DNA from: Macrostomum lignano
Lineage: Eukaryota
Assembly: GCA_002269645.1 (NCBI GenBank)
Contig: NIVC01000094.1
Span: forward strand, 1,054,001 to 1,118,000
DNA: 64,000 nucleotides
Direction of reading: 5' to 3'
Made by a program: the position numbers and the translations under genes. Below the pieces are notes generated by a model that saw only the letters and a program-made list of their open reading frames with translations, did not search any database and was not told the DNA's origin. This document shows, piece by piece, positions 3,269-53,340 of the stretch (position 1 is the stretch's first letter; every line of letters begins with the position of its first letter).

Positions 3269-3991
3269 TCAGCTAGCCGAAGTTTTCCCCGACGCGGACT
3301 CAGCAGCCGCCGAGGCCCGCAGTTGCTCGCCCATTGCCCGAAACCGATTGGCCAGAGCTTCATCTCTCGGGCCGCAGTCGCCTCTGGCGTAGGCCGTGGC
3401 CGCGTTGAAGCAGCCGTTGGCGTAGCCCAGCTCGCAGGCGCGCACGGCAAAGCGCAGCGACTCCGGCAGATCGCGCGGCTTATCCGGCGCTTCAATCATG
3501 TGCAGGGCGGACAGGTGAAAGCAGGCGGCGCCGTAGTCGGCCCGACAGGCCTTGTCGAAAGCCTCCAGAGCGCCCGGCAGGTTGGGCGCGTGACTGGCCA
3601 GGGCTTTGGCGTCGATGACGCCCAGACCGAAGCAGCCGGTCGGGCTGTCCAACTCGTGGCAGGCTCGGCTGTAAAATCGGCGCGCCGCGTGGCAGTCCCT
3701 GGCGGCGCCGCCGAGGCCGCGCAGTCGCGCGTTGCCCAGCCGCAGGCAGCTGTCGGCGTGGCGCAACGAGCCGCAGGCGTCGGCAAGCAGGCCGAGGGCC
3801 TCCTCGCGAGGCTCCTTGGCGCGCTGCTGCAGGAGGGCGTCAGCCAGGTGGTAAGCGGACTGACCGGCTGCGGCCAGCCTGCTGGCGTCGCTGCTGCCGC
3901 CTTCCACGCGCCGTCGGGCCTCGGCGTAGATGGAGCGCAGCTCCTCCAGCGACTCAGTTGGCGCCGACTGCGTGTGAGGTGTCGGCGACTT
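3269..3991 (-). CDS. COA7: Cytochrome c oxidase assembly factor 7 (Sel1-repeat protein); single coding exon starting at a splice acceptor, no in-frame ATG
   Basis: Cys-rich Sel1-like repeats (HADSCLRLG, FYSRACHELDSPTGCFGLG, AFDKACRADYGAACFHLS, FAVRACELGYANGCFNAA, GDCGPRDEALA) match the COA7 layout. Acceptor tgtcgcag|AAG at 3991 is phase 0; in-frame TAG upstream at 4033-4031. Confidence 0.8.
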   Translation of the reverse strand, partial: KSPTPHTQSAPTESLEELRSIYAEARRRVEGGSSDASRLAAAGQSAYHLADALLQQRAKEPREEALGLLADACGSLRHADSCLRLGNARLRGLGGAARDCHAARRFYSRACHELDSPTGCFGLGVIDAKALASHAPNLPGALEAFDKACRADYGAACFHLSALHMIEAPDKPRDLPESLRFAVRACELGYANGCFNAATAYARGDCGPRDEALANRFRAMGEQLRASAAAESASGKTSAS

Positions 3992-4131
3992 CTGCGACAA
4001 ATTGGTTACTTGCTGATGATTGGCGCGGCTCTAATCTAGTAGCTTGGCAGCTCTAATCTTATCTGATGTCTCTAATCTTATGAGTAAAAACAAGCCTAAA
4101 TTAAAGATTAGATGAACACGGGTCTATTGAC

Positions 4132-4425: not shown

Positions 4426-4699
4426 TGTTGGGCCTAGTGCGTGGGGTTGGGGTGCGCTTTTACTCCGTGTATTGTTTGTGTTCTTAACTCTGTGCGTGTA
4501 CTCATGGTCCGTGGCTCACGCTTTTTGCACGTCTCTGCTTTATCGTGATTTTAATGTACGTTGTTGGTGTTTTAGCCCTGGGGTGGGGGTGGCTACTATT
4601 GAACCTCGCTTGTAATAAATCGTATCGTTGGTTGTCGGTGCTCTTGGCACTTTCGTCTTGTCTCGCATACTCTCAGCTCATGACTTGTTCATTTCAACA
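4426..4699 (+). repeat. 5' LTR (274 bp)
   Basis: TGTTGG...TCAACA; matches the 3' LTR apart from 6 substitutions and a 34-bp extra segment before AATAAA (hand alignment). Confidence 0.97.
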
Positions 4700-4702
4700 T
4701 TT

Positions 4703-4720
4703 TGGCGTCGCGAGCAGGAT
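4703..4720 (+). promoter_or_regulatory. Primer-binding site, probably tRNA-Ser
   Basis: TGGCGTCGCGAGCAGGAT; its reverse complement ATCCTGCTCGCGACGCCA resembles a tRNA 3' end with a G discriminator, as in tRNA-Ser. Confidence 0.75.
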
Positions 4721-4726
4721 CTACAG

Positions 4727-7700
4727 ATGTCTATAAAGCTACGAGACTCACTGCCTCTCAACAACATTGAAGAGTTGCGGGCATGGATCGAGGTCTTTGA
4801 CGCCCAGGCGCGATCAAAAGGAGTGAAGGACACCGATCGCACTGATGACACAGCCGGCAATCTGGCGTTGACCGATGCCTTCCTTGGCTGCCTTGGCGTG
4901 GCACAGCTCATCAAAGTGAAGCAGCTGGTCGCGCCCAAACCGCTCTCGCAGATGAAGTGGGCGGAAATCAAGGAGTGCCTCGTGAGGTTTCTGGAGCCCA
5001 AGAAGAGGCTGTTGATTGCCGAGAGAGCGGCTTTCATGTCCATGCGCCAAGGAGACGGCGAGACGGTTGCCGGCTTCGCTGCCCGACTTCAAGAGCAGGC
5101 GGTGGTGTGCGAATTCGAGAAGCTGAAGGGCGAGAATGTTGATCCAGCTGAGCAGCTGATCAAAATGCGCCTCATCGCCGGTCTCAGCAACCAGGAGGTC
5201 CGGAGCAAGGTTCTCGAGCGCGAAGTCTCCGCAGAGCTCTCGGTGAGCCAGATCACCGAGTACGTGCAGCAACTTCAGATGGTGAGCAAATTTTCGTTCG
5301 GGCCACTGACTGCTCCGGCCAAGCTGAAGGAGACTCGGCGGTGCATCAGGCATCGCCCGCTAGCCAGGAGGTGCCAGAAGAGGATTCTGCTGGTGCCAAT
5401 AGCATCAACGCGGCTGAGATGGTGAGGCCCAGAGCCGGTGGAGGCCAGAGCTGCCAGCGCTGCGGCCAGGCGCAACATAGCAGACCGACAGACTGCCGGG
5501 CCCTGAAGGTCACCTGTCACAAGTGCGGGAAGACTGGCCACTTCGCGAAGGTCTGCCGGAGTGCCAGGAACCACTTTGTCGCACCCAACGAATCCAAGCA
5601 CTCTGACTCAGCCGTGACCAGAGACGAGCCGGTTTTCTACTGCGGTGCGGGCACCCCTGCTGCACTCTGCGATGTGAAAATCAACAGAAGGCAGGTCAAA
5701 ATGGAAAAGGACAGCGGCGCCTCGTGCTCACTAATCTCGAGAAAGATCTGGGAAGAACTCGGCAGGCCGCCACTGAAGTCGCCCAAGTCTCGGATGCTGG
5801 CCTACGACGGGCACGTGATGAAGCAGCTCGGCATCCTGGAGTGTCTGGAGACTGGCGGCCCTGATGGCCGCTTCGCTGCGGCGGAGCTGCCCGTCATCGA
5901 ATGCGAGCAGAATTTCGGGTTGCTCGGCCGGGATCTGCTCAGCTCGCTGCCAGCTCACCACTCAGATGAGGCCAAGCCGCCCAGCAACAACAGGTACGAG
6001 AGCTTGTTGGGCATCAAGGGAGCAGTTGGCGAGATCCTGTTGAAGGCGGGAGCCAGGCCGATTTTCCAACCAGCCAGAGAGCTGCCGCTGGCGCTGCGTC
6101 CACTGGTGAAGAAGGAGCTGGACCTGATGGAGAAGGCGGGCATAGTTGAGAAGGTGACGTCCTCAGAGTGGGGCAGCTCCATAGTGGTGACGGTGAAATC
6201 CGACAAGATGTCTGTGAGGATCTGCGGAGACTACACTGCTGTCAATCATTGGGTGCAGGACCAGACGTACTTGACTCCGTCCGTCGAGACAGCCTTCTCA
6301 AAGATGGGAAACAAGAAGTTGTTCTGCCGACTGGATTTATCTGACGCTTATTATCAGGTTCCGCTGGAAAATGAGTCAAAAGACATCACCACGATCAACA
6401 CCCCTTTCGGCTGCTACCGCTTTAACAGGCTGCCGTACGGCATCAGGTTTCTCCGTCTGTGTTCCAGCGCGAGATGGAGAAGCTGCTGGGTGAGCACCCA
6501 AGTGTACCAGGATGATGTGCTCATGGGAGCGGTGTCAAAGGCGGAGCTGCAGAATATCAGAGAGAAGGTGCTGGACAAGCTGAGGGCAGCTAATGTGAAA
6601 ATCAACGAAGCGAAGTGCATTTTGGAGGCCAGAAGCCTAAAGTTCCTGGGCCACATCATCGATGAAGAGGGGATCAAGCCGGATCCGGGAATGGTGCAGA
6701 AGATTCAGGATGTGGAGGCTCCAAAAAGCAAGAAGGATCTAGAGCGGTTTCTGGGCTTGGCGCAGTTCTATGGTCGGTTGGTTCGCAACTTTGCTGAGAA
6801 GTGTCGGCCTCTGCAGGAACTTCGTCGAGCGGACCGTGTGTTTGACTGGAGTGCGGCTGCCGAGGCAGCGTTCACCAATGTGAAGCAGAGCCTGAGCTCG
6901 AATCCGTGTGTGAAACCGTTTGACGTCAACTCGCCGGTGTGTCTGCGGGTGGATGCTAGCGAGCAGTCTCTGGGCGCTGTGCTGGTGCAGTCAGGGCACC
7001 CAGTCATGTACCTCTCTCGGGCGCTGACCAAGTCTGAGGCCAACTACTCCAACATTGAGCGGGAGGCTCTGGCCATTGTCTGGGCGGTGGAGCGAGCCCG
7101 CAAGATGCTCCTGGGGAAGAGGTTCACGCTCCAGACTGACCACGAGCCACTGAAGTACATCTTCAATCCCAGCAAGAACCTTCCTAAAACAGTGTCGGCA
7201 AGACTAACTCGCTGGGCCCTGTATGTGCCAGGAAGACTGATGGTGGATGCGGATGCCTTATCTCGTTTGAGTTTTGCTGCCCAAGACCCTCCAAGTGACG
7301 CCGTGCACCAGCTGGAGCATGAAGAGGTCGTGTCAGAAGGAGCTCTTGTGACTCTGCAGGATCTTCGTGAGGGAACCAGGATGTGCGCGTTGATGAAGCG
7401 GCTGCAGCAGAGGATCAGAACAGGCCGGTGGGGCCAGGTGTCGCAGGTGGAGAGGCTGTACAAAGCGTGCCGGGAGGCGCTGTCGGTGGAAGACGGTCTG
7501 GTGATCCACGGAACCAGAATTGTGCCCCCACCTGTTCTCCGCAGGCGCATTCTGGAGGTGGCGCACGACGAGGTGCATCCGAGCAACGACAACACCAAGG
7601 CGCACATCTCCAAGGAGTTCTGGTGGCCGGGTCTCGATCGCGATGTTCGCAGCTTTGTGGAGCGCTGCCAGCAGTGCTCAGAAACTCGGCCAGTCCTGCA

Positions 7701-8544
7701 GCGGAGAATCGACACCTGGCCAGCCGAGAGTGAGCCGTGGTCCCGGGTTCACATGGACCATTGTGAGATTTCTGGTGTCGGCCTGCTACTGCTACTGTCG
7801 GACTCCTACTCCGGGTGGCCTGAGGCGATTCAGGTGCCAGACCGAACTGCGGACAGTGTCCTGCGGGTTCTGAGAGCGGTATTTGCCAGGAACGGAGTGC
7901 CTCGGACGCTGGTGTCGGACAATGCGCCGGAGTTCAAGTCGGAGAAAGTGTCCCAGTGGCTGCGCAGCATCGGGTGCCAGGAGCTGCACACTCCACCGTA
8001 CCATCCGGCCTCGAACGGTCAGGCAGAAAGGCTGGTGAGGATCATCAAGGATAGACTCAAGGCGTGGACGAAGATGGTGCCGTTCGATCACTTCCTGCAG
8101 AAACTGCTGCTGACGATCAGGACCAGCCGGCCCAGTGGAAATTGAGCGGCATCTCCGGACGTTCTGATGTGGGGTCGTCGCCTTCGCCACCCGCTAACCA
8201 TGACTGAGTAGGTGGGCGATCCAATCTGGCTGAGGATGCGTCCGGGATTTTCGCCGGTTCCGGCCAAGTTCGTGGTGCAGCACGGCCAGAACACGGCGCT
8301 GGTAGCCCCTGCGGACCAATCGGACGGCGGCCTGCGGCTGGCGCACTCGAATCAGTGGACCGGCCGGCCGAGTGCGCCTGGGTCGCCTGAGGGGGCCAAA
8401 CCTGAGGCGGAGTTGCCGGAGCAGCTTCCTGGCGCAATGGTTGAGCACCTTCCTGATCCGGAACCAACGGTGGCGCCAATGAACAGTGGCCAGCGAGAGC
8501 CGTACGAGCTTCGGCCTTGCCAGCCTGTCTGCTTTAAAGTATAG
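4727..8544 (+). pseudogene. Disrupted gag-pol polyprotein
   Basis: ATG at 4727. Motifs: CHKCGKTGHFAKVC knuckle, DSGAS protease, LDLSDAYYQ/YQDD RT, VDAS/YSNIEREALA RNase H, H..H..C..C and HMD/SDN/NGQAE integrase. Lesions: frameshift near 5310-5340, a compensated frameshift pair near 6450-6505, an apparent ~10-codon deletion in RNase H (RWALYVPG), in-frame stops at 8143 and 8209. Confidence 0.9.
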
Positions 8545-9135: not shown

Positions 9136-9650
9136 CACCTGAAGCAATCTAATTTAATATTAAAACTTTAAATGGAACCACAAGGAAAAGTCATTGACCT
9201 CATAATTATGAAAATCGCAAAGTTTATTAAAACAATGTAAAAATCTAATTAAGAAGTGAACCTTCGAATGTACATGTATTGTACTGAGTTTAAGGCATTG
9301 TTTAGCATGGTGTACAACAGGCATTTAGGCCAACTTTAAAACCTCGCACAGCATAATTTAATGACTGGAGTAAAATGTCAATAAGGAATCGGTGATTTAA
9401 AAGTAAAGCAAATTTATAATCTGCCATATTCAAAGTATATGGATAAACACTTCCAAAGGGCCAATGGAAGCGTTCTTAATAATATAATATAATGATTATA
9501 GCTGTTTATATCTCCACGCATTATTGATAGTTAATTGTGTAATGATTGAGCGCAATTTTAATGCTACAATACATACATATACTACTCATACCGTAGGGAA
9601 GTAAGTAGCTGCAACCATCTTTCAGTAGCTTTGTTTGACATCAACTGGCA

Positions 9651-9900
9651 TAGCTACTGACACTATAACTGACACAGCTACTGACACTATAACTGACACA
9701 GCTACTGACACTTTAACTGACACAACTACTAACACTATAACTGACACAGCTACTGACACTTTAACTGACACAACTACTGACATTATAACTGACACAGCTA
9801 CTGACACTTTAACTGACCCAGCTACTAACACTTTAACTGACACAGCTACTAACACTTTAACTGACACAGCTACTGACACTATAACTGACACAGCTACTGC
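9651..9900. repeat. 24-bp minisatellite (GCTACTGACACTATAACTGACACA)
   Basis: ~10 tandem copies read directly. Confidence 0.95.
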
Positions 9901-10028: not shown

Positions 10029-13000
10029 TCAATTCAAATTGTGCTTCTCCCGCAGCTGCCACGCCATCTCGAGCAGTTTCAGCCGCTCATCGGCATCATC
10101 AATATGATAGGCAGCCAGATCGGCCAGTGACAAACGGCTGGGCGCGCTCACCACGTTCGGGAACTGGGTGTGGCCCGGCAGCGCCCTGTGCGTGTCCCTG
10201 AACACCCGGTCAGCAATGGCGTTCAGCAGCCTCCAGGGCAGGAGCTCCTCCCGGCGTTCCTGCTCGCTTCGCTCCGAGCTGCAAGCGCTGCGCAGGCAGC
10301 TAAGGAGGGCGCGAACTCCGAATGAGCCCGAGCTGCTGCCGGCCAGAGCTACCTGGCTGGCGCCGGCTGAGTACAACCGGAAATAGTCCGGACTCTCCAG
10401 GATCTGCGGGAAGGGGCGGACTCTTCAGGCTAATATTGCCTGTGTCTAACCTGATCTACTAATCTGCATTTCTCTCCTAACCCCCCATTCCTCTCCTAAT
10501 CCCCCATTCCTCTCCTAATCCCCAAATTCCTCTCCTAATCCCCAATTACTCTCCTAATCCCCAATTCTACGTAATAAGTCTACTCAATCCTCAACCCGGA
10601 GATAAGCAGCGGATTCGGCAGCCAGCGACGCACCGGCAGGCTGGGCGCGACTCCCATCGTCAAGTTGTCGGCAGTTCGGCAGGCGTCGTAGAAGCCGAGC
10701 AGGAGGCGCCGGCCGCTCTGCTGGTGCACCGGCAGCGCCTCGAACAGCGGCCTGACCAATTCGGCGTCGATATCGACGGAGCCGCCGCCGGGCAGCACGA
10801 ACAGGTTGCGACCGATGGTGTTGGCGTCCTGGCTGGACACCGACAGCTCGCCGTGGCCGTCCACCAGCAGTAGCGCCTGCACCGGGTGGCCTTCGGTGGT
10901 TTTGAATTGGATAAAGTTTTGCATTGGCCTTAAGTTGTAAACGAGACCGATAAGTTATAATAGGTAGTAAAGAAACACCAGGATACATATCGGCAATAAA
11001 TACAGTTTCGATACATATCGGCAATAAATACAGTTTCGATACATATCGGAAATCAATACAGTTTCGATACATATCGGCAATCAATACAGTTTCGATACAT
11101 ATCGGCAATCAATACAGTTTCGATACATATCGGCAATCAATACAGTTCCGATACATATCGGCAATAAATACAGTTTCGATACATATCGGCAATCAATAGT
11201 TTCGATACACATCAGCAATCAATACAGTTCCGATACATATCGGCAATAAATACAGTTTCGATACATATCGGCAATCAATACAGTTTCGATACATATCGGC
11301 AATCAATACAGTTTCGATACATATCGGAAATCAATACAGTTTCGATACATATCGGCAATAAATAGTTTTGGTACATATCGGCAATCAATAGTTTCGATAC
11401 ATATCGGCAATAAATAGTTTTTATACATATCGGCAATCAATAGTTTCGATACATATCGGCAATAAATAGTTTTTATACATATCGGCAATAAATAGTTTCA
11501 ATACATATCGGCAATCAATAGTTTCGATACATATCGGCAATAAATATTTTCGATACATATCAGTAATAAATACAGTTTCGATACATATCGGCAATTAATA
11601 CAGTTTCGATAAATATCGGGAATCAATGCAGGTTCGATACATATCGGTCAGGAAAATTCGAAAACTAGACGGACAGCTGAAAGTACTAACAATCGCTGCC
11701 GCCAGCTTCCCTCAGCAATTCGCAGAAGTCGGCAACCACGGCCAGCAGGGCTTCCTTGGCGTCGCCGGAGTCGCCGCGGGCCCAGTCGCAGCAGACGATT
11801 GTCTGGTAGCCCAGCAGTTGCAGAGCGCCCGCTACCTGGCGCAGTTCGCCGGGCACGCATGGCAGATCGCCGCACTCGTAGCGACTGGCGCCAATGAGAA
11901 GGGCGAACTTGCGCCACGCCGGCTGAGCGACCGTGACCAGGCGATTAGCCGCGAATATCGAGAAGAAATCCGTGAGCATCACGAGGTCTGATAAGCGGGT
12001 CCTAGTAGCCGAGACCTGGAATGTTAAATATGACCATGTTAAGTGACGGATTTTGTAAAACCTGTTTATGATCGGAAATCTGATCTATGACCAGAAAAAA
12101 TCTATATGACCAGAAAGCCTATCTATATGACCAGACAGCCAATCTATATGACCAGAAAGCCGATCTATATGACCAGAAAGCCTATCTATATGACCAGAAA
12201 GCCGATCTATATGGTCAGACAGCCTATCTATATGATCAGACAGCCTATCTATATGATCAGACAGCCTATCTATATAATCAGACAGCCTATCTAAATTATC
12301 ATCAGACAGCCTATCTATATGATCAGACAGCCGATCTATATGATCAGACAGCCTATCTATATGATCAGACAGCCTATCTATATGATCAGACAGCCTATCT
12401 ATATGATCAGAAAGCCTATCTATATGATCAGACAGCCTATCTATATGATCAGACAGCCGATCTATATGATCAGACAGCCTATCTATATGACCGGGAAGCC
12501 AATCCTTGCGACCAGAAAGTCTATCTGTTACCAGAATGTCGTATGACATAGCTCATGCACAGAACGCTGACCTGCAGTTCAGGCAGCTGCTCCTGGTACC
12601 GCTCCGCTATCTCCCTGATGGACTTCGACACCCCAGTGAGGAAGCTGTCCACCTGCAGTCGTCCCTCGTCGCACAGGTGCTGGCGCAGCTGCGAATTCAA
12701 AGCCGAAATGCCGAACGACTGTCGATTCCGGTTGTGCCTGGCGCTGTCCAGCACGGCAGCCGCGGCGCTGCCGTAGCTGGTGGCGTGCAAGCGGTGGATC
12801 TGGCTGCCACGAACTGTCACGCCGAGGTCTCCGCCCAGGTGCACAGACGGGCAGCTGGCAATACGGCACATGTCCATCATCACCACTAGAAGGCCTTTGT
12901 CGCTGCTGTCATCGCATGCCGGTTGCCTGCGACCAGCCGACATCGCGTGATTGCCAGGCAGGCAGTCGGCCAGAGGCTTGAGGAAGTCCTCCTCGACACG

Positions 13001-14785
13001 GAGGAAGCTGTCGGGCTGCTCCAGCTTGGCGTCGATTGGCAGAAAACAGGCGCTGGTGGTGACGCCGTCTGCTTTGTAGTTCTGCAACATGCATGATGTT
13101 GTTTCGATATTCGATACATATCGGAACTTTAAAAGCTTTGTTATACACCGTTAATAAATTAGATACATATCAGTATTTAAATATCTTCAATACATATCGG
13201 TACTTAAATAGCTTTAATACATATCGGTACTTAAGTAGCTTCGATACATATCAGTACATAAATAGCTTCGATACATATCGGTATTTAAATAGCTTCGATA
13301 CATATCGGTATTTAAATAGCTTCGATACATATCGGTACTTAAGTAGCTTCGATTACAGAAACAGAACTTCCATATATATCGGCAGGGATAGCTAGGTGCA
13401 CATACGTTTACGACAGTGCCATGACCATCTAACAATAGAAACAGGTGCGGCTCCGGCCCGCTCAGAAGTGCCAAAATGTGACGCAGCCGATCGATGGCGC
13501 AGAGCAGCTTTGCCCGGCTCGGATCCATCAGACGGAGGGTCCGGTAGCCCAGCTTGCGAAGGTAGTCCTCCAATTGGTCGAGCTCTCTTGTATTACCGCA
13601 ACCAAGCCCCGGCATGTGCTTGTAGCTCTGGCAGCTAACTATCAGGGCGTATTTGTGCGTTCGCTCCATGTCGATAGGCAGCGGGCCCTTCGGCTTGATG
13701 TCTGGCACTGCCTGCAGCATTGGAGGCGCAGGTTGGATGCAGGGTTGCGACAAAAATGCGACTTAAGAAAGACTTAATTACTAAAGGTAGGAAGACAGGG
13801 CATTGCACTTCCTAGAAATATTTTTAAAGGCCGAGTAGGAGTTGTAGTAGTAGCTTGCAAAATATTTAATTTCCTATTTACGTAGTAAATTCTTTGCGCA
13901 GAACTACTATTACTACTACTACTACTACTACTACTATTACTACTACCACCACTACTACTACTAAGTATTAGACTTACACGCGGCAAATGTGGCCTTGCCC
14001 GAACTTTCAGGCTGAACATCGCGTATGGTCGAGAACTGACGGGCAGCTGGTTGGCGAGTTGCACTGCGCAACGGTACTGGCCCTGCGGGGGTAGTTAAAG
14101 TACATGTGTACACATACAATAGATATGATTATTTGTCTTCATTATAGGCAGTCTCTTCACTTACTTGATCAGTCAGCGCCACTTGCTTAATACGCAGGTG
14201 AACACCGGTGCAGAGCACCTCATCACTGAGCGCCTTGTGCCAGGACACGCTGGCTATGGCAGCAAACTGTTCTCCAAGGGTAACACCAAACAATGCCACG
14301 CCGCCTTCATCAACTTCCAAGGTGCGACTGGCTGGTAGTAGTCTTTCAAACAAGCCGACGGGCTGCTGCTGCTGCTGCTGTGGTGGCTGAGGCGCCGGCG
14401 GGTTGATGCCGCGAGCGGCGGCGGCGGCAGCGTCAGCAGCGAAGCCCATGGCGGCGAGCACCTCAGCAGACTCAGGTATCCGGCGGAGCACGGAGACCAG
14501 ATGGGCCAGGGTGGCGCCGCGCCGCTGGCCCATTCTTAGCAGGGCGTCGTGCGCCAAATCGATAGAATTGCTGCCAGTCTTGGCCTCGAGCTCCAGAATC
14601 TCAGTCTGCTTCAGAAAGAAGGGCATCACGCGTTTGATGAGCGGATCGCCTGGCGGGACGCCTAACTTGGTGTATAGCGTGTGAAACTGTCCACCTGGCA
14701 GGTGCTGCAGCATGAGCTGATGCGCGTTCATTTGCCTGACGGGTCTCTGCTGCGGCTGCGGCTGCTGCGGGAGCGCGGAAACCAT
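10029..14785 (-). CDS. MALT1-type paracaspase with death domain, one Ig domain and two tandem caspase-like domains (~832 aa; exons 14785-14165, 14082-13978, 13711-13406, 13081-12572, 12015-11691, 10890-10634, 10403-10029)
   Basis: All introns are GT-AG with matching phases (0,0,0,0,1,0); total 2499 nt. Death-domain-like helix set (LAHDALLRMGQRRGATLAHLVSVL). Ig strands (VSWHK...LTDQ|GQYRC). Domain 1: KYALIV...LLDGHG...FLPIDA...MMDMCR. Domain 2: KFALLIG...LVDGHG...FYDACR. These match MALT1 KVALLIG/YAGHG/MVPVDA/LLDMCR. Confidence 0.85.
10470..10566. repeat. ~20-bp short tandem repeat (CTCCTAATCCCCCATTCCT) in paracaspase intron 6
   Basis: ~5 copies read directly. Confidence 0.85.
10983..11645. 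repeat. 26/28-bp minisatellite (GATACATATCGGCAATAAATACAGTTTC) in paracaspase intron 5
   Basis: More than 20 copies read directly. Confidence 0.95.
12103..12495. repeat. 21-bp minisatellite (CTATATGATCAGACAGCCTAT) in paracaspase intron 4
   Basis: ~18 copies read directly. Confidence 0.95.
13106..13352. repeat. 27-bp minisatellite (GATACATATCGGTATTTAAATAGCTTC) in paracaspase intron 3
   Basis: Read directly; same core as 10983-11645. Confidence 0.9.
13902..13962. repeat. (ACT)n microsatellite in paracaspase intron 2
   Basis: Read directly. Confidence 0.95.
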
Positions 14786-15885: not shown

Positions 15886-16921
15886 TCGACAGGATCAGAA
15901 TCCTACAGACGGGATCGGAATCCCTACAAACAGGATCAGAATTCCTACAGACGGGATCAGAATCCCTACAGACGGGATCGGAATCCCTACAAACAGGATC
16001 AGAATTCCTACAGACGGGATCGGAATCCCTACAAACAGGATCAGAATTCCTACAGACGGGATCAGAATCCCTACAGACGGGATCGGAATCCCTACAAACA
16101 GGATCAGAATTCCTACAGACGGGATCGGAATCCCTACAAACAGGATCAGAATTCCTACAGACGGGATCAGAATCCCTACAGACGGGATCAGAATCCCTAC
16201 AGACATGATCAGAATCCCTACAGACAGGATCAGAATCACTACAGACAGGATCAGAATCCTACAGACAGGATCAGAATCCCTACAGACAGGATCAGAATCC
16301 CTACAAACAGGATCAGAACCCCTACAGACAGGATCAGAATCTCAACAGACAGGATCAGAATCTCAATAGACAGGATCAGAATCCCTACAGACAGGATTAG
16401 AATCACTACAGACAGGATCAGAATCCTACAGACAGGATCAGAATCCCTACAGACAGGATCAGAATCCCTACAAACAGGATCAGAACCCCTACAGACAGGA
16501 TCAGAATCTCAACAGACAGGATCAGAATCTCAATAGACAGGATCAGAATCCCTACAGACAGGATCAGAATCCCTACAGACAGGATCAGAATCCCTACAGA
16601 CAGGATCAGAATCCCTACAGACAGGATCAGAGTCCCTACAGACAGGATCAGAATCCCTACAGACAGGATCAGAATCCCTACAGACAGGATCAGAGTCCCT
16701 ACAGACAGGATCAGAATCTCAACAGACAGGATCAAAATCCCTACAGACAGGATCAAAATCCCTACAGACAGGATCAGAGTCCCTACAGACAGGATCAGAG
16801 TCCCTACATACAGGATCAGAGTCCCTACAGACAGGATCAGAATCCCTACAGACAGGATCAGAGTCCCTACAGACAGGATCAGAGTCCCTACAGACAGATC
16901 AGAATCCCTACAGACAGGATA
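15886..16921. repeat. 21-bp minisatellite (ACAGACAGGATCAGAATCCCT), ~1 kb
   Basis: Read directly; starts just 3' of the SMIM8 stop on the minus strand. Confidence 0.95.
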
Positions 16922-17785: not shown

Positions 17786-20700
17786 TTAGGTGAGCCTGTC
17801 GTCCAGACTCTGAATCTCGCCATTGGACAATTCGGCAACAAGTTGAGCAGGTTGAAAATCAAAGTGCTGATGCTTCAGTACCTGCCAAATTTGGTTGGAA
17901 ATCGAAAGTTCTGTTTATACTAATATAAGTAGTATTATTGCAATATTTTCCGTCCATACCTCGTTACCCCAGCTGGACCAGCCAGGTGTGAGATTTCTGG
18001 CAAACAGTTCGAGGCATCGATAATCGTCTGAGCCAAACAGTGCGTTGAGCAGCGCTGTGGGCAAGGGATTTTATGGCTCTATCAGATGATAGTGCAACTC
18101 ATATTTTCATTTCCTATCGGTAGAAACCTCCTCCAATTAGAGCAATGGCCATCGACAATTATCACCTGTATGCATCACACTCACCCTTACACCGGACTAA
18201 TTAGAGCAATAGCCACCCAATAATTATCACCTGTATATTACTCACCCTTATCTGGACTAATTAGAGCAATAGCCACCCAATAATTATCACCTGTATATTA
18301 CTCACCCTTACCTGGACTAATTAGACCAATGGCCACCCAATAATTATCACCTGTATATTACTCACCCTTACCTGGACTAATTAGAGCAATAGCCACCCAA
18401 TAATTATCACCTGTATATTACTCACCCTTACCTGGACTAATTAGAGCAATAGCCACCCCATAATTATCACCCGTGTACATTGCTCATCACTACACCTGAC
18501 CAACTACCTAATACCCTACTAATAATCGGAGCAATAATGCCGGACTTAAATAACTCACGCTTCAAACACGGCTTCCTTGAGTGCAGGCAAGACGGCACGG
18601 ACATCAGAGTGAGCTCGGCGGGCACGCGTTTATAAACGTCGGATGACGCTGCAAGCTGGGCGGGCGCCAGCACGTAAAGCCGTTCGAAAGGCCGGCGAAA
18701 TCTGCTGTGCAGTGGGGTCAGCGGTCGCCCCGTAGCGGTCACCTGCTCAAGAGTCAGCGGAATGGGCAGCTTCTGCGAATACTTTTATTACTGTTAACTA
18801 TGTCGATCGAACCGGCTGACCCACCTTGACCCACAGCCAACGGCCGATGCAGCGCAGGCCCCAGGCAGCGGTCAGGTCTTCTAGCACGCAGCGCACATGC
18901 TTCAGCGAGTTGGTGCACCAGACCAGCACCAGAGGCCCCGGCCACCCCTTCGCTCCTCCCCCTGACTGTTCAGCTCGATGACGCAGCAACTCCGGCACGG
19001 GTATTCGCGACAGAAGCTCGAGCCCGATGGACTCAGCGGCAGAATAGACTCCGCGCCTGCGTGCCGACGCGTTTGGCCAGGGCGGGTCGGCCAGCACAAC
19101 GTCGTAGGGCCCGTCCGATGAGCTCAGCTGGAGCAGCAGAGGCTTGGCGCTGCACAACTGTGAGATGGCGAACGAGCTGCGAGCCGGCACAGCATAGCAA
19201 CCACCTAGCAGACGAACTGCTCGCCGTTGGCTGACGCTGGGCTCAACAAGAGCAACCCGGCCGAGACGGCAAGCGTCGGCCAGAGCAGCGCCCGGGCCGC
19301 AGTCGGTGCCAGAGTTGAACAGCTCAAACAGGGCCGTCTGGCTCTCAATGCCGCAGATTGAGCGAAGCTGGCCAGCCTCAGTTGGCGTCAGGAAGCTGAC
19401 CAGCCCGGACTGAGTAGCTAGGGACAGCCGGCCTTCAATTGATGATACTGAGAATGCGGACTGGGCAAACCGGGTGATGGACGAGTTTGTCCTTTATAAG
19501 TACACTGAGTTCTTTTATTTATTAGGATCATTTATTATTATTATTAGAGGCAGGGGGGTTGTGTGCACCCTGGCGCACTTTAAGCGACATAGGCACACAA
19601 CCGGCGAGAGGCATTACTGCCCATTCCGCCGACTCCCCTGAGCAGGCACACAAGCGCGCGGATACGTACGCAGGCACACACTCACACAGGAGTGTACAGC
19701 GGCCCTAACTTTATATTATCGTTAGGCATGTACACTTCACTGCGCCTTGGGGGGTTGGCTCTCAAGGCCGTTAATTGCACGAGCAGAGCCAAGCCGAAAT
19801 TCCAATTCAGCCCCAAATTAATGTGACTGCATTTGGAATCGAGCTTGGGTCGCTGGCACACCAGAGCCTGCGCTAGACCGCTGGGCTACGGCCCCCCCTA
19901 TTAGGATCATACTCTGAGGATTATAGGGGATTCCAGCACTAGTTTGAGGATTATAGGGGATTCCAGCACTAGTTTGAGGATTATAGGGGATTCCAGCACT
20001 AGTTTGAGGATTATAGGGGATTCCAGCACTAGTTTGAGGATTATAGGGGATTCCAGCACTAGTTTGAGGATTATAGGGGATTCCAGCACTAGTTTGAGGA
20101 TTATAGGGGATTACAACACTATTTTGAGGATTATAGGGGATTCCAGCACTAGTTTGAGGATTATAGGGGATTCCAGCACTAGTTTGAGGATTATAGGGGA
20201 TTCCAGCACTAGTTTGAGGATTATAGGGGATTCCAGCACTAGTTTGAGGATTATAGGGGATTCCAGCACTAGTTTGAGGATTATAGGGGATTCCAGCACT
20301 AGTTTGAGGATCTTTGGGGATTATAGCACTATTTTGAGGATTATAGGGGATTCCAGCACTAGTTTGAGGATTATAGGGGATTCCAGCACTAGTTTGAGGA
20401 TCTTTGGGGATTATAGCACTATTTTGAGGATTATAGGGGATTTCAGCACTAGTTTGAGGATCTTTGGGGATTACAGCACTAGTTTGAGGATCTTTGGGGA
20501 TTACAGCACTAGTTTGAGGATCTTTGGGGATTCCAGCACTAGTTTGAGGATCTTTGGGATTCCAGAACTAGTTTGAGGATCTTTGGGGATTACATCACTA
20601 GTTTGAGGATCTCTGGGGATTACAGCACTAGTTTGAGGATCTCTGGGGATTACAGCACTACTTTGAGGATCTCTGGGGATTACAGTACTAGTTTGAGGAT

Positions 20701-21161
20701 CTCTGGGGATTACAGCACTACTTTGAGTATATTTAAGGATGACAGGGCTAATTTAAGGATCTTTGGAATGATAGCACTGCCTTGGGGATCTCGTTTTGGC
20801 AGCACTATACTTAAATAAATGGATTATAGAGCCTACATCATCAGACTCGCCACTGTCCGTGTGATCTTCTACGAAACCAGCCGCAGCGGCCTTGCGTTTC
20901 CTTGATTTGGCAGGTTTTTCACGTTCGGGCTCTACAAACACAGACAAGAATTATTGTGTGCATTGAATATACATACTATTCTACTGATTCATTCTATTCA
21001 GTAGCGAATGCGTATATCTTACCATTGTTATACAGCGGATCTAGAATAAGATATTCCAAGTCGGATATTGATTTTGCTTCCTTCAAGTTCCGAAGATGCC
21101 GGAGGGTCTGACGCAGGAAAGTCGTCTCCAGCTGCAGCCTGGCATCGCTGGAAGCTTCTGC
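17786..21161 (-). CDS. METTL4: METTL4 (MT-A70 family N6-adenine methyltransferase); exons 21161-21023, 20931-20837, 19460-18825, 18742-18559, 18054-17960, 17881-17786; start codon not in this model
   Basis: YAVPARSSF, YDVVLADPPW, LVWCTN, WLWVK|VT, SVPSCLHSRKP, CLELFARNL..GWSSWGNE|VLKHQH match METTL4. Splice phases are consistent (1,0,0,1,0). The two upstream exons are less certain (KRK basic patch, phase fit). Confidence 0.85.
18140..18478. repeat. 60-bp minisatellite in a METTL4 intron
   Basis: Unit CTCACCCTTACCTGGACTAATTAGAGCAATAGCCACCCAATAATTATCACCTGTATATTA, ~5.5 copies. Confidence 0.95.
19912..20730. repeat. 30-bp minisatellite (TTTGAGGATTATAGGGGATTCCAGCACTAG) in a METTL4 intron
   Basis: ~27 copies, near-identical at the left and diverging to the right. 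Confidence 0.97.
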
Positions 21162-21240: not shown

Positions 21241-22487
21241 CCAGTCTGGGGGTGCTGAGGACCAGTCTGAGGATCCGAGAGGGTGCTGAGGACCAGCCTA
21301 AGGATCCGAGAGGGTGCTGAGGACCAGCCTAAGGATCCGAGAGGGTGCTGAGGACCAGCCTAAGGATCCGAGAGGGTGCTGAGGACCAGCCTAAGGATCC
21401 GAGAGGGTGCTGAGGACCAGTCTAAGGATCTGAGAGGGTGCTGAGGACCAGCCTAAGGATCCGAGAGGGTGCTGAGGACCAGCCTGGGGATCCGAGAGGG
21501 TGCTGAGGACCAGTCTGAGGATTCGAGAGGGGCTGAGGATCCGAGAGGGTGCTGATGACCAGTGTGGGGATCCGAGAGGGTGCTGAGGACCAGCCTAAGG
21601 ATCCGAGAGGGTGCTGAGGACCAGCCTAAGGATCCGAGAGGGTGCTGAGGACCAGCCTAAGGATCTGAGAGGGTGCTGAGGACCAGCCTAAGGATCTGAG
21701 AGGGTGCTGAGGACCAGCCTAAGGATCCGAGAGGGTGCTGAGGACCAGCCTAAGGATCCGAGAGGGTGCTGAGGACCAGCCTAAGGATCTGAGAGGGTGC
21801 TGAGGACCAGTCTGAGGATCCGAGAGGGGCTGAGGATCCGAGAGGGTGCTGAGGACCAGTCTGGGGATTCGAGAGGGTGCTGAGGACCAGCCTGGGGATC
21901 CGAGAGGGTGCTGAGGACCAGCCTGAGGATCCGAGAGGGTGCTGAGGACCAGCCTGGGGATCCGAGAGGGTGCTGAGGATCAGCCTGGGGATCCGAGAGG
22001 GTGCTGAGGACCAGTCTGAGGATTCGAGAGGGGCTGAGGATCCGAGAGGGTGCTGATGACCAGTGTGGGGATCCGAGAGGGTGCTGAGGACCAGTCTGAG
22101 GATCCGAGAGGGTGCTGAGGACCAGTCTGGGGATTCGAGAGGGTGCTGAGGACCAGCCTGGGGATCCGAGAGGGTGCTGAGGACCAGCCTGGGGATCCGA
22201 GAGGGTGCTGAGGACCAGTCTGAGGATTCGAGAGGGGCTGAGGATCCGAGAGGGTGCTGATGACCAGGGTGGGGATCCGAGAGGGTGCTGAGGACCAGTC
22301 TGAGGATCCGAGAGGGTGCTGAGGACCAGTCTGGGGATTCGAGAGGGTGCTGAGGACCAGCCTGGGGATCCGAGAGGGTGCTGAGGACCAGCCTGGGGAT
22401 CCGAGAGGGTGCTGAGGACCAGTCTGAGGATCCGAGAGGGGCTGAGGACCAGCCCGAGAATCCGAGAGGGTGCTGAGGACCAGCCTT
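21241..22487. repeat. 31-bp minisatellite (GAGGACCAGCCTAAGGATCCGAGAGGGTGCT) with periodic shorter variant units
   Basis: Read directly; lies between CIR1 and METTL4. Confidence 0.95.
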
Positions 22488-37743: not shown

Positions 37744-38816
37744 GGATTTGGGTCCGGGGTTTGCACCGGGGACTCGAGCTGGTCCCGTCAGGTGACTCGA
37801 GACTCAAGCATTCGACCTTCGATCGGGTGGGCGGGCCCGGGCCAGCGAGGTACTCGACGAGAGGTCTAGATGCCTGGGGGTTGCTGGGGCGGCCCGGCTC
37901 GCGTCATGGCTTAGAAACTGCGACGGGTCTCTTATCTGATGAATCTCGCTGTGCTTCTTTTGTCTCTTCTTTTCGTCTCTTTGCTTGCCGGTTTCCTAGC
38001 AAAACAGCTGCTTTTAGAAGCGCGGCCTCGCGCGAAATTGCGAAGGCTATTAAACTTTTTAAGTGGCTGCAGGCAGGTATGACGCAACTGGGATGGTCAC
38101 AAAACTGCAGGTTGCTTTGGCAATTAAATTCTTTATAGATTTCGACGCGCTGACCAGTTCGAATCCTGGCGCATGTTGGAAAAGCGAAGCTCGAAAGCGT
38201 TGTGTCGGCAGCCGCTTGCCATGTGCTGGGGGCTCCTTGGACTGAGTCTGCCCTCAGTGACTCGCCCTCTCTCCCTTTTCTTTCCTTTCACGCCCGGCCC
38301 CTCAGTCCCCGCAACCCCTCCTCCCCCAACCGGTTCTGCCTCTCTCTCGCACTGCCGTACTGTGGCCGGTGGGGAGCCCGCCGCCATTGGCTGGCTCACC
38401 ATCAGGGCCTCCCTCGGCTTGCTGCCTTCCTCCTCTATTTTTATTCTTGCCCCCAAATAACGCCTGCAGATTCTCTCTCTCTCTCGCTAGACTCCTGTCG
38501 CTGCCTCCTTCTTCAAGCAGCAGCTGCCAATTTTGGTAGGGGGGGGGGGGGCAAGGGACTCGACCAGTTGACCCGAATAAGGGGGCCTGCAGACAGACAG
38601 GGTCCCAGTCAGACCAAACCCTCTTGGTCCCCAATGGCCCGGTTAGGAGCCAGTCGTGCACCATCTAGGCCCCAGCTGTGCTATATTTGGGGACTCTGGG
38701 GTTGTTCGAAGACGCGCTTAAGATAATCTTTGTAGCTGCTTGGAGAAGCGGCGCATAACTTCTGGCATACAAACTGACGCTTGCCAACCATGCCGTTAGC
38801 TTTGGTAAATCTAATC

Positions 38817-40650
38817 CTCTCTCTCCCTCTCTCTGATCCTCTCTCTCCTCTCTCTGATCCTCTCTCTCCTTCTCTCTGATCCTCTCTCTCCCTCTCTCTG
38901 ATCCTCTCTCCCTCTCTCTGATCCTCTCTCTCCCTCTCTCTTTGATCCTCTCTCTCCCTCTCTCTGATCCTCTCTCTCCCTCTCTCTATGATCCTCTCTC
39001 CCTCTCTCTCTGATTCTCTCTCCCTCTCTCTCTGATTCTCTCTCCCTCTCTCTATGATCCTCTCTCCCTCTCTCTCTGATTCTCTCTCCCTCTCTCTCTG
39101 ATTCTCTCTCCCTCTCTCTGATCCTCTCTCCCTCTCTCTGATCCTCTCTTCCTGTCTCTATGATCCTCTCTTCCTCTCTCTCTGATTCTCTCTCCCTCTC
39201 TCTCTGATTCTCTCTCCCTCTCTCTCTGATCCTCTCTCTCCCTCTCTCTGATCCTCTCTCCCTCTCTCTGATCCTCTCTCTCCCTCTCTCTTTGATCCTC
39301 TCTCTCCCTCTCTCTGATCCTCTCTCTCCCTCTCTCTGATCCTCTCTCTCCCTCTCTCTGATCCTCTCTCCCTCTCTCTGATCCTCTCTCTCCCTCTCTC
39401 TTTGATCCTCTCTCTCCCTCTCTCTGATCCTCTCTCTCCCTCTCTCTATGATCCTCTCTCCCTCTCTCTCTGATTCTCTCTCCCTCTCTCTCTGATTCTC
39501 TCTCCCTCTCTCTGATCCTCTCTCCCTCTCTCTGATCCTCTCTCTCCCTCTCTCTTTGATCCTCTCTCTCCCTCTCTCTGATCCTCTCTCTCCCTCTCTC
39601 TATGATCCTCTCTCCCTCTCTCTCTGATTCTCTCTCCCTCTCTCTGATCCTCTCTCCCTCTCTCTGATCCTCTCTCTCCCTCTCTCTTTGATCCTCTCTC
39701 TCCCTCTCTCTGATCCTCTCTCCCTCTCTCTCTGATCCTCTCTTCCTCTCTCTCTGATCCTCTCTCCCTCTCTCTCTGATCCTCTCTCCCTCTCTCTCTG
39801 ATCCTCTCCCTGTCTCTATGATCCTCTCTCCCTCTCTCTCTGATCCTCTCTCCCTGTCTCTATGATCCTCTCTCCCTCTCTCTCTGATCCTCTCTCCCTG
39901 TCTCTATGATCCTCTCTCCCTCACTCTGATCCTCTCTTCCTGTCTCTTTGATCCTCTCTCCCTCTCTCTCTGATCCTCTCTTCCTCTCTCTCTGATCCTC
40001 TCTCTCTCTCTCTCTCTCTGATCCTCTCTCTCCCTCTCTCTGATCCTCTCTCCCTCTCTCTGATCCTCTCTCTCCCTCTCTCTGATCCTCTCTCCCTCTC
40101 TCTGATCCTCTCTTCCTGTCTCTATGATCCTCTCTTCCTCTCTCTCTGATCCTCTCTCTCCCTCTCTCTGATCCTCTCTCCCTCTCTCTGATCCTCTCTC
40201 TCCCTCTCTCTGATCCTCTCTCCCTCTCTCTGATCCTCTCTTCCTGTCTCTATGATCCTCTCTTCCTCTCTCTCTGATCCTCTCTTCCTCTCTCTCTGAT
40301 CCTCTCTCTCTCTCTCTGATCCTCTCTCTCCCTCTCTCTGATCCTCTCTCCCTCTCTCTGATCCTCTCTCTCCCTCTCTCTGATCCTCTCTCCCTCTCTC
40401 TGATCCTCTCTTCCTGTCTCTATGATCCTCTCTTCCTCTCTCTCTGATTCTCTCTTCCTCTCTCTCTGATCCTCTCTCTCTCTGATCCACTCTCCCTCTC
40501 TCTCTGATCCTCTCTCTCTCTCTCTCTCTGATCCTCTCTCTCTCTCTCTCTGATCCTCTCTCTCTCTCTCTCTGATCCACTCTCCCTCTCTCTCTGATCC
40601 TCTCTCTCTCTCTCTGATCCTCTCTCTCCCTCTCTCTCTGATCCTCTCTC
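38817..40650. repeat. Compound (CT)n-GAT microsatellite (CTCTCTGATCCT family)
   Basis: Read directly. Confidence 0.97.
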
Positions 40651-42668
40651 CCCCTACGAGTGTATTCAATGAGCACAATGATTTCGTTATGCTTCGACTC
40701 GATTCCCATCCAAACGGACCATGATAAGCAAAACTTATCTGAAGAGGCCGCCACACCGGAGACAGGCAGTGTGGGTGACAGCAAATATTAACCAAGCCGA
40801 CAGTTGAACCGCTACCAGCCCTTCCCAGGCGTGAAGAGCGAAAGTAGTGGGTGATGGCGGCTGAGCTGGAAGCCCTGGGATCTGTTGGTTGAGCAGCAAC
40901 TCAAACGAAGAACGCGTGCCCGGAAGCTTTCGGCTCTTTTCCCATTTAATCCCATTCGTTTCCATTCCCCCCACTAATGCCCCGCAATATGCTCAGGCTT
41001 TGTTTATCCTTAGCAAAGCCTTAAATCCCCACGCGCAGCGTCCCTTCCAGCTTCTCTTCTGCATCTAGAGGGATCCGAATCCTCAGCTCTCCCTTCAGCT
41101 TCCTCGGATCGGAAAGAAGGCAGGAGAAAGTTTTTGGTGATGGAGGTGAGCAAAGCTCCACGAATTCCAGCCTCTCTGCCTGCTTGCAAACGCCAGATGT
41201 CTCATAAATTTGCTTGCTTTAGCGTTAGTCATGCACCTTACTCGTGCGGCTAAGGCGACGCAGAATCTCCCAGCTTCATCAGTGAATTCTCCTTCTCGGT
41301 TCTCCAGAATTTTCAAGTCAAAATTTCCCACAGCACTCAACTAGAAGGTGCTGCAGGGGGATCTGATCGGTATCTGGGGGCTGGGATTGCGGGCCTGTCC
41401 GGTCCTTCGTCACTTCAGTTCCATCAGATTTCCCATAATCCCTATCACTTCCCCTCATAGCACTCACATCCCCCCCCAGTGCGTGTCAGCTGTCAGCTCC
41501 CCTTCCCACGAAGGAAATTTCCAGTTGAATCTGCAGTTGCGCAACGCAGCGCACAATCTCCATTACCAGTTCGACAAACTATTCGAAATTAACTGCCCCG
41601 CGGTGCCGGCGCCAACTGGCTGCAACACCAGGGTTCGAAACTGTTTAGGCCGAGGAGGATCGGCGGTCTCGGCCAGCTGGCAAACCGGACAGATTGGAGC
41701 TCCGCCACCCCACGCTGTGTTAATGAGCTTTCTAGCAACAGATAAGGCATCGCCGAATGCCGTTCGGTCTCCAAGCTACAGAGAAAGCGAAATTCGCGCA
41801 AACTGAAATCGAGGCCGCAATCTTATCGTGACTGATGCGTTCCGCCTCTTCAGCGCTCGCTTATCCTTGGCCTCGAAGCTCGAAGCAGAGGAATTCGAGA
41901 TCTGAGGAACTGCCAAGTGACTAAGCGCGTCATCTGGTCGCCCCAGCCCATCTTACTCTTTTGACAAGCCTCTTTAGCCGCTCCATCAAGCTGATTGACT
42001 CTCCGGGGATTCACTTTGTTCTTCTTAGTTTGCCTGGCTCGCGAAACTCAAAATCACCAGAGGGAGGAAAACTGGCAATCGCGAAAAAGTGCAAGCCGAC
42101 TAACCCTGGTCCTGCAGATTGCATAAACATCCTCGCCAGCTTTGGTGGGATAAACAAATCCTCCCCCCCCCCAAGACATGGACTTGGGATCTTGAGTGTC
42201 CAGGCGAGATTCTATTGGCCGAAAGAAGCTTACAGAAGAAACAACTTAATTCCTACAAGCTTCTATCAATCCAGTTTGCCCGAGCAAAAAACTGACAAAA
42301 CCGGGCAACTGCAAAGCTGGGTCAAATTTCTGACACCGAAAGCTGCGGCTACCTGAAGCGAGCCTTGGTCTGGGCGGAGGTCAGGTAGGCAAGCGGAGGT
42401 CAACGGCACTTTAGAATTTTTCGTCCCTGCAATTTGCCGGAGAGAAAGAGGGGGGGCAGCGGGAGGGAGGGAGGGGGGGTCACGTGGGAGGGCCAGTAAA
42501 CAAGACCGCTATGCCACTTGATTTGAGCTGAGGGAGACTCGAGTGTTTTGAGCGGGGCTTTGGAGCCGAAAATGCTTGGCGAATGCGGGCCGGAGACCGC
42601 AGCTTTTGAGGCTTCGGCACGCAACAGTCGGCAAGTGGGGAGACGCGGGGAGCTGGAAGCTGAAATAG

Positions 42669-51590: not shown

Positions 51591-52189
51591 CTTCCTTAAT
51601 TCCCGTCTTCAATTAATTTCCACTCCCCCAATTCTAATTAATTTCCTGCAATCTGTCCTCAACAAATTGAAAAGCCAATTGCTCTGCTGAGTGGCTGAGA
51701 GCTGCTCTCAATGGCGAAGAAAAGGCAAACCAAGAACCAATTAATAGGAAGCGGGACCTCACTTAGAGGGGACTCAAATTATTGCTTGAGACTCAGCAAT
51801 AAAACTGACTGCTGGTGACAGGTGGCCGGGGACCCGGCACAGGAAATCAGTCTTGGCACGAGAGTTCTGATTTGTAATTTGTTTTTTGGCATTCATAAAC
51901 AGTTGCCAGTTGCTCTCCGCTGCTCTGAGTGCCTTCTCACCTCGTGGAATTCAGCGGCAGCTTTGGGGACACATCTGCATATCTGGGATCTCCTTCCTCT
52001 CCTCTCCCTGGCCATAAGCGGATTGAATTTCAATCAGATTTTGGCTCTGTGACAGCAGCGAAGATTTGGCGACTCTGATCTGACAGCTCCGTAGCCTTAT
52101 CAGCTCAGAATGAGCATTGACTCAAGCAAATTCACAGCCAATGTCTCCTTCAGTGATTTCTCCTCGTTTTTTCTTCTCTTCTCCTCTCT

Positions 52190-53122: not shown

Positions 53123-53192
<70 letters not shown>

Positions 53193-53340
53193 CCTCTCTC
53201 CCTCTCTCTCTGATCCTCTCTCCCTCTTTCTCTGATTCTCTCTGATTCTCTCTGATCCTCTCTCCTTCTCGCTCTGATCCTCTCTCCCTCTCTCTCTCTG
53301 ATCCTCTCTCCCTCTCTCTCTGACCCTCTCACCCTCTGTC
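52190..53340. repeat. Compound (CT)n-GAT microsatellite, same family as 38817-40650
   Basis: Read directly; includes a pure (CT)n run near 53125-53190. Confidence 0.97.

Follow-up and report, generated by a model that had tools for sequence, protein, structure and literature searches.

A candidate single-chain relative of type 1 paracaspases with two protease domains in the flatworm Macrostomum lignano

We analysed a 64,000-nucleotide stretch of the Macrostomum lignano genome (contig NIVC01000094.1, positions 1,054,001 to 1,118,000; hereafter the window, to which all positions below refer) and describe within it a minus-strand gene, running from 14785 to 10029, whose predicted product carries two caspase-like domains of the Peptidase C14 family one behind the other. 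The gene is real and is expressed in M. lignano. We read its product as a highly derived, fast-evolving relative of the type 1 paracaspases (the MALT1 family), which has a paracaspase-like active-site layout but fails two defining features of that family, the C-terminal immunoglobulin (Ig) domain Ig3 and the residue E500. Taken as a whole, the observations are best explained, with a probability that we put at roughly 0.55, by a single-chain derivative of an animal type 1 paracaspase in which the caspase-like domain has been duplicated to form a tethered pseudo-dimer.

Gene model and the two protease domains

Seven exons (Table 1), assembled by three-frame translation and inspection of splice sites, form an open reading frame (ORF) of 832 amino acids; all six introns begin with GT and end with AG, and their phases are compatible. 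From its N-terminus the protein consists of a helical region, one Ig-like domain, C14 domain 1, a linker of ~18 residues, C14 domain 2 and a short helical tail of ~26 amino acids that runs up to the stop. The model is 100% identical to GenBank PAA91173.1 over the length of that entry (824 amino acids, 5'-partial, without the first eight residues of the model), which is titled 'hypothetical protein BOX15_Mlig034005g3, partial', from M. lignano. A first-pass annotation of this DNA had proposed seven phase-compatible exons coding for ~832 amino acids, and both the exon assembly and this identity bear it out; its positions for the junction of exons 4 and 5 (12572/12015), a TAG (12523–12521), an ATG (11979) and all four sequence motifs were also right.

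The junction of exons 4 and 5 joins residues Q514 and V515 (PELQ/VSATRT). Read-through of exon 4 into intron 4 meets the TAG after 16 codons, and the ATG at 11979 is internal to the ORF. In all seven public models, which come from two independent annotation efforts and cover three loci, exon 4 runs in frame into exon 5 (...QLPELQ/VSATRT...), and for this reason a single polypeptide carrying both domains, as claimed at first pass, has good support at the level of transcripts assembled from short reads. The GenBank annotation of M. lignano was built with StringTie/TACO on RNA-seq together with a de novo transcriptome, and its TBONE step splits transcription units wherever trans-splicing or polyadenylation was measured (PMC5730564); the annotation processed in this way leaves the gene uncut between the two protease domains. 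Older models of 538–539 amino acids end at GGSDC followed by a stop, and do not cross intron 5.

In two other genomic copies of the gene (L001 and L002) none of the seven exons is missing, every intron has its GT-AG pair and the ORF is intact. Exon identity to the copy in the window is 99–100%, and intron lengths vary among the three. We considered a chimera of assembly or annotation and rejected it, as three loci and two annotation pipelines agree. The 90% identity cluster of PAA91173.1 contains two more GenBank copies (g1 and g2) and four UniRef entries from the older annotation, which bear the name 'Ig-like domain-containing protein'. The architecture has thus already been deposited (PAA91173.1, PAA56689.1, PAA48081.1 and UniRef A0A1I8HHJ6), though unnamed, the entries being called only 'hypothetical' or 'Ig-like domain-containing'. 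The suggestion that it was undescribed therefore fails for the databases if taken literally, but holds for the literature, where we found no paper on this gene, on flatworm paracaspases, on double paracaspase domains or on this architecture.

The Pfam profile Peptidase_C14 (PF00656) matches two stretches of the protein (E 1.1e-15 for the whole). Scored alone, domain 1 reaches 43.8 bits (E 3.2e-11) and domain 2 reaches 21.2 bits (E 2.6e-4), the cutoff being 21.4 bits. Despite its sub-cutoff score we count domain 2 as a secure C14 domain, because a phmmer search of 1.84e9 proteins matched it to P0009, a bacterial TPR-C14 protein, at E 1.8e-5 and 34% identity. The two domains are 26% identical to each other over 231 amino acids (BLASTP, E 1e-8). 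Agreement on this scale lies well outside what chance would produce.

Each domain has the motifs of an active site. In domain 1 these are LLDGHG with His339 (13423–13421) and MMDMCR with Cys416 (12868–12866), and in domain 2 LVDGHG with His635 (10855–10853) and FYDACR with Cys693 (10681–10679). Both were aligned in MAFFT with the domains of 12 type 1 paracaspases, taken from supplementary data of Staal et al. (2018; PMC5978004). H339/C416 and H635/C693 align to H415/C464 of MALT1 as a predicted catalytic dyad in each, and MALT1 residues H415, G416, D462, C464 and R465 are conserved in both domains, which thus keep GHG and D-x-C-R; the position of D365 is Glu in both. Together with the two Pfam matches, the aligned dyads agree with the earlier claim of two caspase-fold domains with intact His and Cys. 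Domain 1 retains the dimer-interface residue E549 of MALT1 (PMC3747146), which is the Glu of its PELQ stretch; domain 2 has Asn there.

Paracaspases and both flatworm domains also share an end motif, Q-x-P-E-[VIL]...L-x-D. In domain 1 this motif spans the exon 4/5 junction and is complete only with the ~14 codons that open exon 5, and the alignment confirms the earlier proposal that the splice completes it in parallel with the end of domain 2. Because a bacterial C14 domain also ends in a similar Q-x-P motif, the end motif argues for the splice, and not specifically for paracaspase identity. Domain 1 is split by one intron seven residues past its His, behind GHGTVVN, and by another within the terminal motif; in domain 2 one intron precedes the His by ten residues and one follows the Cys by 15. 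These unshared positions indicate that the duplication is old and not an artefact of assembly.

The GenBank coding sequence, 5'-partial, begins at 14761 directly after CTCCCGCAGCAG (window 14761–14785, minus strand), which resembles a splice acceptor. Trans-splicing at 14761 would place the ATG of a spliced leader (SL) in frame (M-PQPQQRP...). As the spliced leader ends in ATG (PMC8629364) and CTCCCGCAGCAG is acceptor-like, the real start codon may be donated by the leader and not be the genomic ATG at 14785.

Relation to type 1 paracaspases

Several comparisons link domain 1 to paracaspases. By BLASTP against a small panel, it scored 25–44 bits with animal paracaspases and at most 20 bits with three bacterial C14 domains; its best external match was a Haemonchus paracaspase (44 bits over 263 amino acids), with other animal paracaspases at 25–38 bits. 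Domains 1 and 2 together matched a paracaspase alignment with 97.7% probability in hhalign (E 2.5e-12), and the full protein is colinear with six invertebrate paracaspases through the N-terminal region, the caspase-proximal Ig and the caspase-like domain. An AlphaFold2 model of domain 1 was made from an alignment of domain 2 and seven bacterial C14 proteins that contained no MALT1 sequence. The model is of moderate confidence (predicted local distance difference test, pLDDT, 59.7; predicted template modelling score 0.66). When it was compared with the PDB by Foldseek, ranks 1–29 were all MALT1 (E 1e-9 to 2e-7, template modelling score ~0.53), followed by caspases (from E 4e-7, 0.45–0.51). A sequence profile of the two domains to which one bacterial sequence had been added matched in the PDB, with MALT1 at the top (1.5e-7), caspase-4 (5e-4) and a metacaspase (0.03).

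MALT1 has two Ig domains between its death domain and its caspase-like domain. In the flatworm protein there is one Ig-like domain and no room for a second; it aligns to the caspase-proximal Ig of paracaspases, and their first Ig stays unmatched in the alignment. The Pfam families V-set, I-set and Izumo-Ig match it below cutoff (E 0.004–0.006), and in the exhaustive phmmer search it matched the Ig repeats of P0008 at E 1.1e-5. Of the first-pass label 'death domain-Ig', the second half is therefore weakly supported; the first half was not, as set out below. No Ig or MALT1_Ig match was found by Pfam after domain 1, and a second C14 domain sits where Ig3 usually does, as had been claimed.

We also considered domain 2 as a type 2 paracaspase and rejected this. 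The Trichoplax type 2 sequence resembles type 1 domains (60–87 bits) and is no closer to domain 2, so that the comparison is uninformative.

The earlier assignment to the paracaspases is thus partly supported: BLASTP, Foldseek and colinearity speak for domain 1, whereas the loss of E500 and the profile scores given below do not, and 'paracaspase' is a best-fit label and not a clean membership.

A proposed tethered pseudo-dimer and alternative explanations

If the protein is a single-chain derivative of a type 1 paracaspase, an ancestral caspase-like domain would have been duplicated in tandem long ago, with the C-terminal Ig3 now absent; we place the event far back because identity between the copies is ~26% and they share no intron positions. 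By analogy with caspase-16 and with MALT1 dimerization, the tethered domains would most probably pack through the β6/α5 face that MALT1 and caspases use for dimerization, with domain 2 taking the place of Ig3 as tethered partner. A covalently linked intramolecular dimer, possibly scaffold-independent or of dual specificity, with a putative role in innate-immune or death signalling, had been proposed at first pass. The outcome would presumably be a permanent pseudo-dimer, independent of scaffold-induced proximity and of the Ig3 switch. MALT1 itself is activated by dimerization of its protease domain and controlled through Ig3 (PMC4713714, PMC3747146). We estimate that the linker of ~18 residues seems long enough for a pseudo-dimer.

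Domain 1, at least, is predicted to be active as a cysteine protease. The more divergent domain 2 may either contribute a second active site or serve chiefly as an activating partner, as FLIP(L) does for caspase-8; the dead domain of caspase-16, a proposed activating partner, offers a second analogy. The preference at P1 may differ from MALT1's strict Arg, since two acidic residues are kept (Glu for D365 and Asp for D462) and E500 is replaced by Ala. In MALT1, D365, D462 and E500 form the Arg-binding S1 pocket, of which E500 is the third anchor of the P1 arginine (PMC4626109).

A number of observations weigh against this explanation. The Ala is found at the E500 position of both domains, in a loop region where the result is alignment-dependent, and E500 is invariant in all 12 of the paracaspases compared. 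A hidden Markov model (HMM) of paracaspases gave 34 bits with domain 1 and 10.5 bits with domain 2, and 65–109 bits with bacterial C14 proteins; by this measure of sequence both flatworm domains are farther from the paracaspase consensus than the bacterial proteins are. Phmmer searches of the PDB with domain 1, with domain 2 or with a two-sequence profile of both returned no C14 chain. For the death domain there was no match to the N-terminus in Pfam or, by phmmer, in the PDB; an HMM of 13 paracaspase death domains reached a non-significant 6.4 bits that covered only residues 81–105 (LLRMGQRRGATLAHLVSVL), and hhalign gave a probability of 4%. The 6.4 bits did exceed all of 2000 shuffles (maximum 5.2), and the N-terminal helices are predicted only at a pLDDT below 40; the N-terminus is possibly a degenerate death domain. 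The full-length AlphaFold model, made from a 7-sequence alignment, has a pLDDT of 34, is unusable and gives no evidence of domain contacts. The three genomic copies show only 10–18 differences in 2.5 kb, too few for selection (dN/dS) to be measured, and the transcript support is short-read based. Finally, no orthologue was found in any other species in protein collections where eukaryotes are clearly under-represented for this family. The exhaustive phmmer search, of representative proteins, yielded no eukaryotic relative, and word-indexed searches with the full protein, with its full-length alignment to six paracaspases and with a caspase-domain alignment brought up nothing beyond the M. lignano cluster and Ig/C14 proteins of bacteria. 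The word-indexed searches also missed known paracaspases used as queries and are uninformative on other flatworms; given the composition of the collections, a restriction to M. lignano is not established.

It is possible, though we think it doubtful, that the chain contains a single working protease. Domain 2 (or domain 1) would then be a regulatory pseudo-enzyme, comparable to those of caspase-16 and caspase-X and to FLIP(L), that retains its His and Cys and stands in functionally for Ig3, either as a partner within the chain or as an autoinhibitor. One domain is inactive in both published tandem caspase-domain proteins, Ig3 regulates MALT1 (PMC4713714) and domain 2 holds the position of Ig3; domain 2 is also far more degenerate than domain 1 (21 against 44 bits with Pfam, 10.5 against 34 bits with the paracaspase HMM), and it is here that Asn occupies the Glu549 position of the dimer interface. 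However, the dead domains of the known precedents lost their dyad, whereas domain 2 retains the His, the Gly next to it, Asp-x-Cys-Arg and the acidic equivalent of D365, at only ~26% identity to domain 1. We give little credence to an origin of the two domains as separate products, from a tandem pair or operon-like unit in which SL trans-splicing to the acceptor of exon 5 (also) yields domain 2 as a stand-alone protein of ~319 amino acids and the fused ORF is a minor or artefactual isoform. Around 30% of M. lignano genes are SL trans-spliced, operons are common and the leader carries a terminal ATG (PMC8629364). An ATG donated by the leader would be in frame with exon 5, which begins in phase 0 and is preceded by TTCCAG; TTCCAG matches the trans-acceptor motif [T/C]TNCAG, but so do the cis acceptors of exons 3 and 4, and the motif is therefore non-discriminating. 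The internal ATG and the stop that read-through of exon 4 meets after 16 codons would suit two products as well. Against them stand the in-frame joining of exons 4 and 5 in every public model, the fact that TBONE, a pipeline designed to divide transcripts wherever trans-splice or poly(A) peaks occur, did not divide this gene, and the need of domain 1 for codons of exon 5 to complete its terminal motif.

A resemblance to MALT1 that is convergent also strikes us as improbable. On this account a lineage-specific C14 protease was joined to an Ig domain, with domain 2 coming, for example, from a bacterial-type or orthocaspase-like gene. The sole C14 match of the whole protein among the 1.84e9 proteins is indeed that of the bacterial P0009 to domain 2, and by BLASTP the match of domain 2 to P0009 scores 56 bits, against 42 bits for domain 1; but P0009 is the best of billions of candidates, its score is inflated by that selection, and other bacterial C14 proteins reach at most 22 bits with domain 2 and 20 with domain 1, while many animal paracaspases reach 25–44 bits with domain 1. 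A convergent origin would accommodate the undetectable death domain, the missing E500 and a profile that reaches MALT1 in the PDB only after a bacterial sequence has been added to it. It would leave unaccounted for the order and spacing of N-terminal region, Ig and caspase-like domain, which are as in paracaspases, and the first rank of MALT1 in Foldseek. Bacterial contamination is contradicted by spliceosomal introns and by location in flatworm sequence.

MALT1 and caspases are switched on by dimerization. A natural paracaspase-like protein that joins two intact active sites in one chain and lacks Ig3 would offer a ready test of whether a tethered dimer is sufficient for activity, and could show what Ig3 contributes and whether the halves of a dimer diverge in specificity. 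The protein is extremely divergent, has so far been recorded from one species, and its function is read from sequence; M. lignano is, however, amenable to transgenesis and RNA interference, so the question is testable there. In animals that lack the CARD-CC/BCL10 scaffold, the mode of paracaspase activation is still an open problem (Staal et al., 2018; PMC5978004). We consider it unlikely that the protein is a 'self-dimer paracaspase' in the full sense, with two competent MALT1-type domains that associate head to tail through the canonical interface, need neither a BCL10/CARD-CC filament nor an Ig3/monoubiquitin switch, and may cut different substrates with active sites whose S1 pocket is altered. 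If so, the caspase superfamily would have its first natural member with two active sites in a single chain.

Surroundings of the gene and comparison with known systems

Table 1. Features of the window, with positions, strand and the evidence or content recorded for each.
Feature	Position	Strand	Evidence or content
Whole coding gene	10029..14785	-	ATG 14785, TGA 10031-10029; exon assembly
Exon 1, aa 1-207	14165..14785	-	Q/P-rich start, helical N-terminal region, Ala/Gln-rich linker, first part of Ig-like domain
Putative death domain, aa ~20-125	within exon 1	-	helical N-terminal region
Ig-like domain, aa ~143-242	13978..14359	-	Pfam below cutoff; Ig-repeat match
Intron 1	14164-14083	-	splits Ig-like domain
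Exon 2	14082-13978	-	end of Ig-like domain
Exon 3	13711-13406	-	C14 domain 1
C14 domain 1, aa ~259-528	11974..13663	-	Pfam PF00656, hhalign, BLASTP, Foldseek
Exon 4	13081-12572	-	C14 domain 1
Intron 4	12016..12571	-	18.5-copy 21-bp minisatellite at 12100-12490
Exon 5	12015-11691	-	first 14 codons close C14 domain 1; also codes for domain 2
C14 domain 2, aa ~547-806	10110..11919	-	Pfam PF00656, bacterial P0009 match, BLASTP to domain 1
Intron 5	10891..11690	-	24-copy 28-bp minisatellite at 10982-11647
Exon 6	10890-10634	-	C14 domain 2
Exon 7	10403-10029	-	C14 domain 2 and stop
Minisatellite arrays	9643-9899, 10467-10567, 10982-11647, 12100-12490, 13162-13353, 15888-16920, 19915-20727		periods 15-62 bp (whole set)
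Minisatellite arrays, continued	21250-22486, 38810-40655, 45491-47980, 50599-51592, 52195-53366, 54568-57705		up to 145 copies (whole set)
LTR-retrotransposon gag-pol ORF	4628-8145	+	934 aa uninterrupted; zinc knuckle, aspartyl protease, reverse transcriptase, RNase H, integrase (Ty3/gypsy-like domain set)
Exon-like ORFs of neighbour genes	3269-4000, 18798-19190	both -	one with Sel1 repeats (28.3 bits, just below cutoff), one MT-A70 methyltransferase with DPPW motif (E 1e-10)

The introns of the gene consist largely of minisatellites with periods of 19–28 bp. Related units of the CGATATGTATCGAA type are present in introns 3 and 5, and the lengths of the arrays vary among the three gene copies. 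The minisatellite of intron 4 contains an open frame of 154 codons (HIDRLSD repeats; 12085–12549, minus strand), which is out of frame with exon 4 and meets a stop before exon 5; it looks like a non-coding by-product of a repeat period divisible by 3. Such arrays, in introns and intergenic DNA, explain the strong GC/AT-skew blocks at 38–57 kb. Past the 3' end of the protease gene, at a distance of ~1.9 kb, lies the ORF of a long terminal repeat (LTR) retrotransposon.

Among known systems, the flatworm protein is most readily compared with the type 1 paracaspases (MALT1/PCASP, Peptidase C14B). It shares with them the order of N-terminal helical region, Ig-like domain and caspase-like domain, the GHG and D-x-C-R motifs, acidic side chains where MALT1 has D365 and D462, and the end motif Q-x-P-E...L-x-D, and the best pairwise and structural matches of domain 1 are paracaspases and MALT1. 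Unlike them, it has one Ig where the aligned paracaspases have at least two, lacks Ig3 and any match to MALT1_Ig, carries a second C14 domain, has Ala for E500 and no detectable death domain, and its divergence exceeds that between bacterial C14 proteins and paracaspases.

Bacterial multi-domain C14 proteins (orthocaspase-like, such as the TPR-C14 protein P0009 and P0015) have D-A-C-R and the Q-x-P end motif in common with the flatworm protein. They provide the highest single pairwise score to domain 2, but at most 20 bits to domain 1, and they are prokaryotic, lack introns and do not have the Ig and helical N-terminus in the flatworm arrangement. Read by eye, P0015 (JGI metagenome, 783 amino acids, 'caspase-like protein') has a degenerate C14-like region (...FSGHGTR..., no Cys motif) ahead of a complete C14 domain (...YYAGHG...SDSCYSGG), and may be a prokaryotic tandem C14 protein with one dead copy.

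Tandem caspase-fold domains are known elsewhere in animals, and to this extent the architecture is not as unprecedented as had been thought at first pass. Mammalian caspase-16 carries two caspase-fold domains in one chain, which arose by internal duplication of the domain-coding exons and are proposed to form the intramolecular equivalent of a caspase dimer (PMC12198278). It is a true caspase, however, whose N-terminal copy lacks His and Cys, so that one active site is left, whereas the flatworm protein is paracaspase-like, has an Ig domain upstream and keeps the dyad in both copies. Similarly, coral caspase-X (AmCaspase Xa–d of Acropora millepora) has two caspase domains in tandem (PMC4715348), but belongs to the caspase branch and not to the paracaspase branch, and is predicted to have an inactive first domain, from which the catalytic His and Cys are missing. 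What is new in the M. lignano protein relative to caspase-16 and caspase-X is, as judged from aligned residues, that the dyad is intact in both copies.

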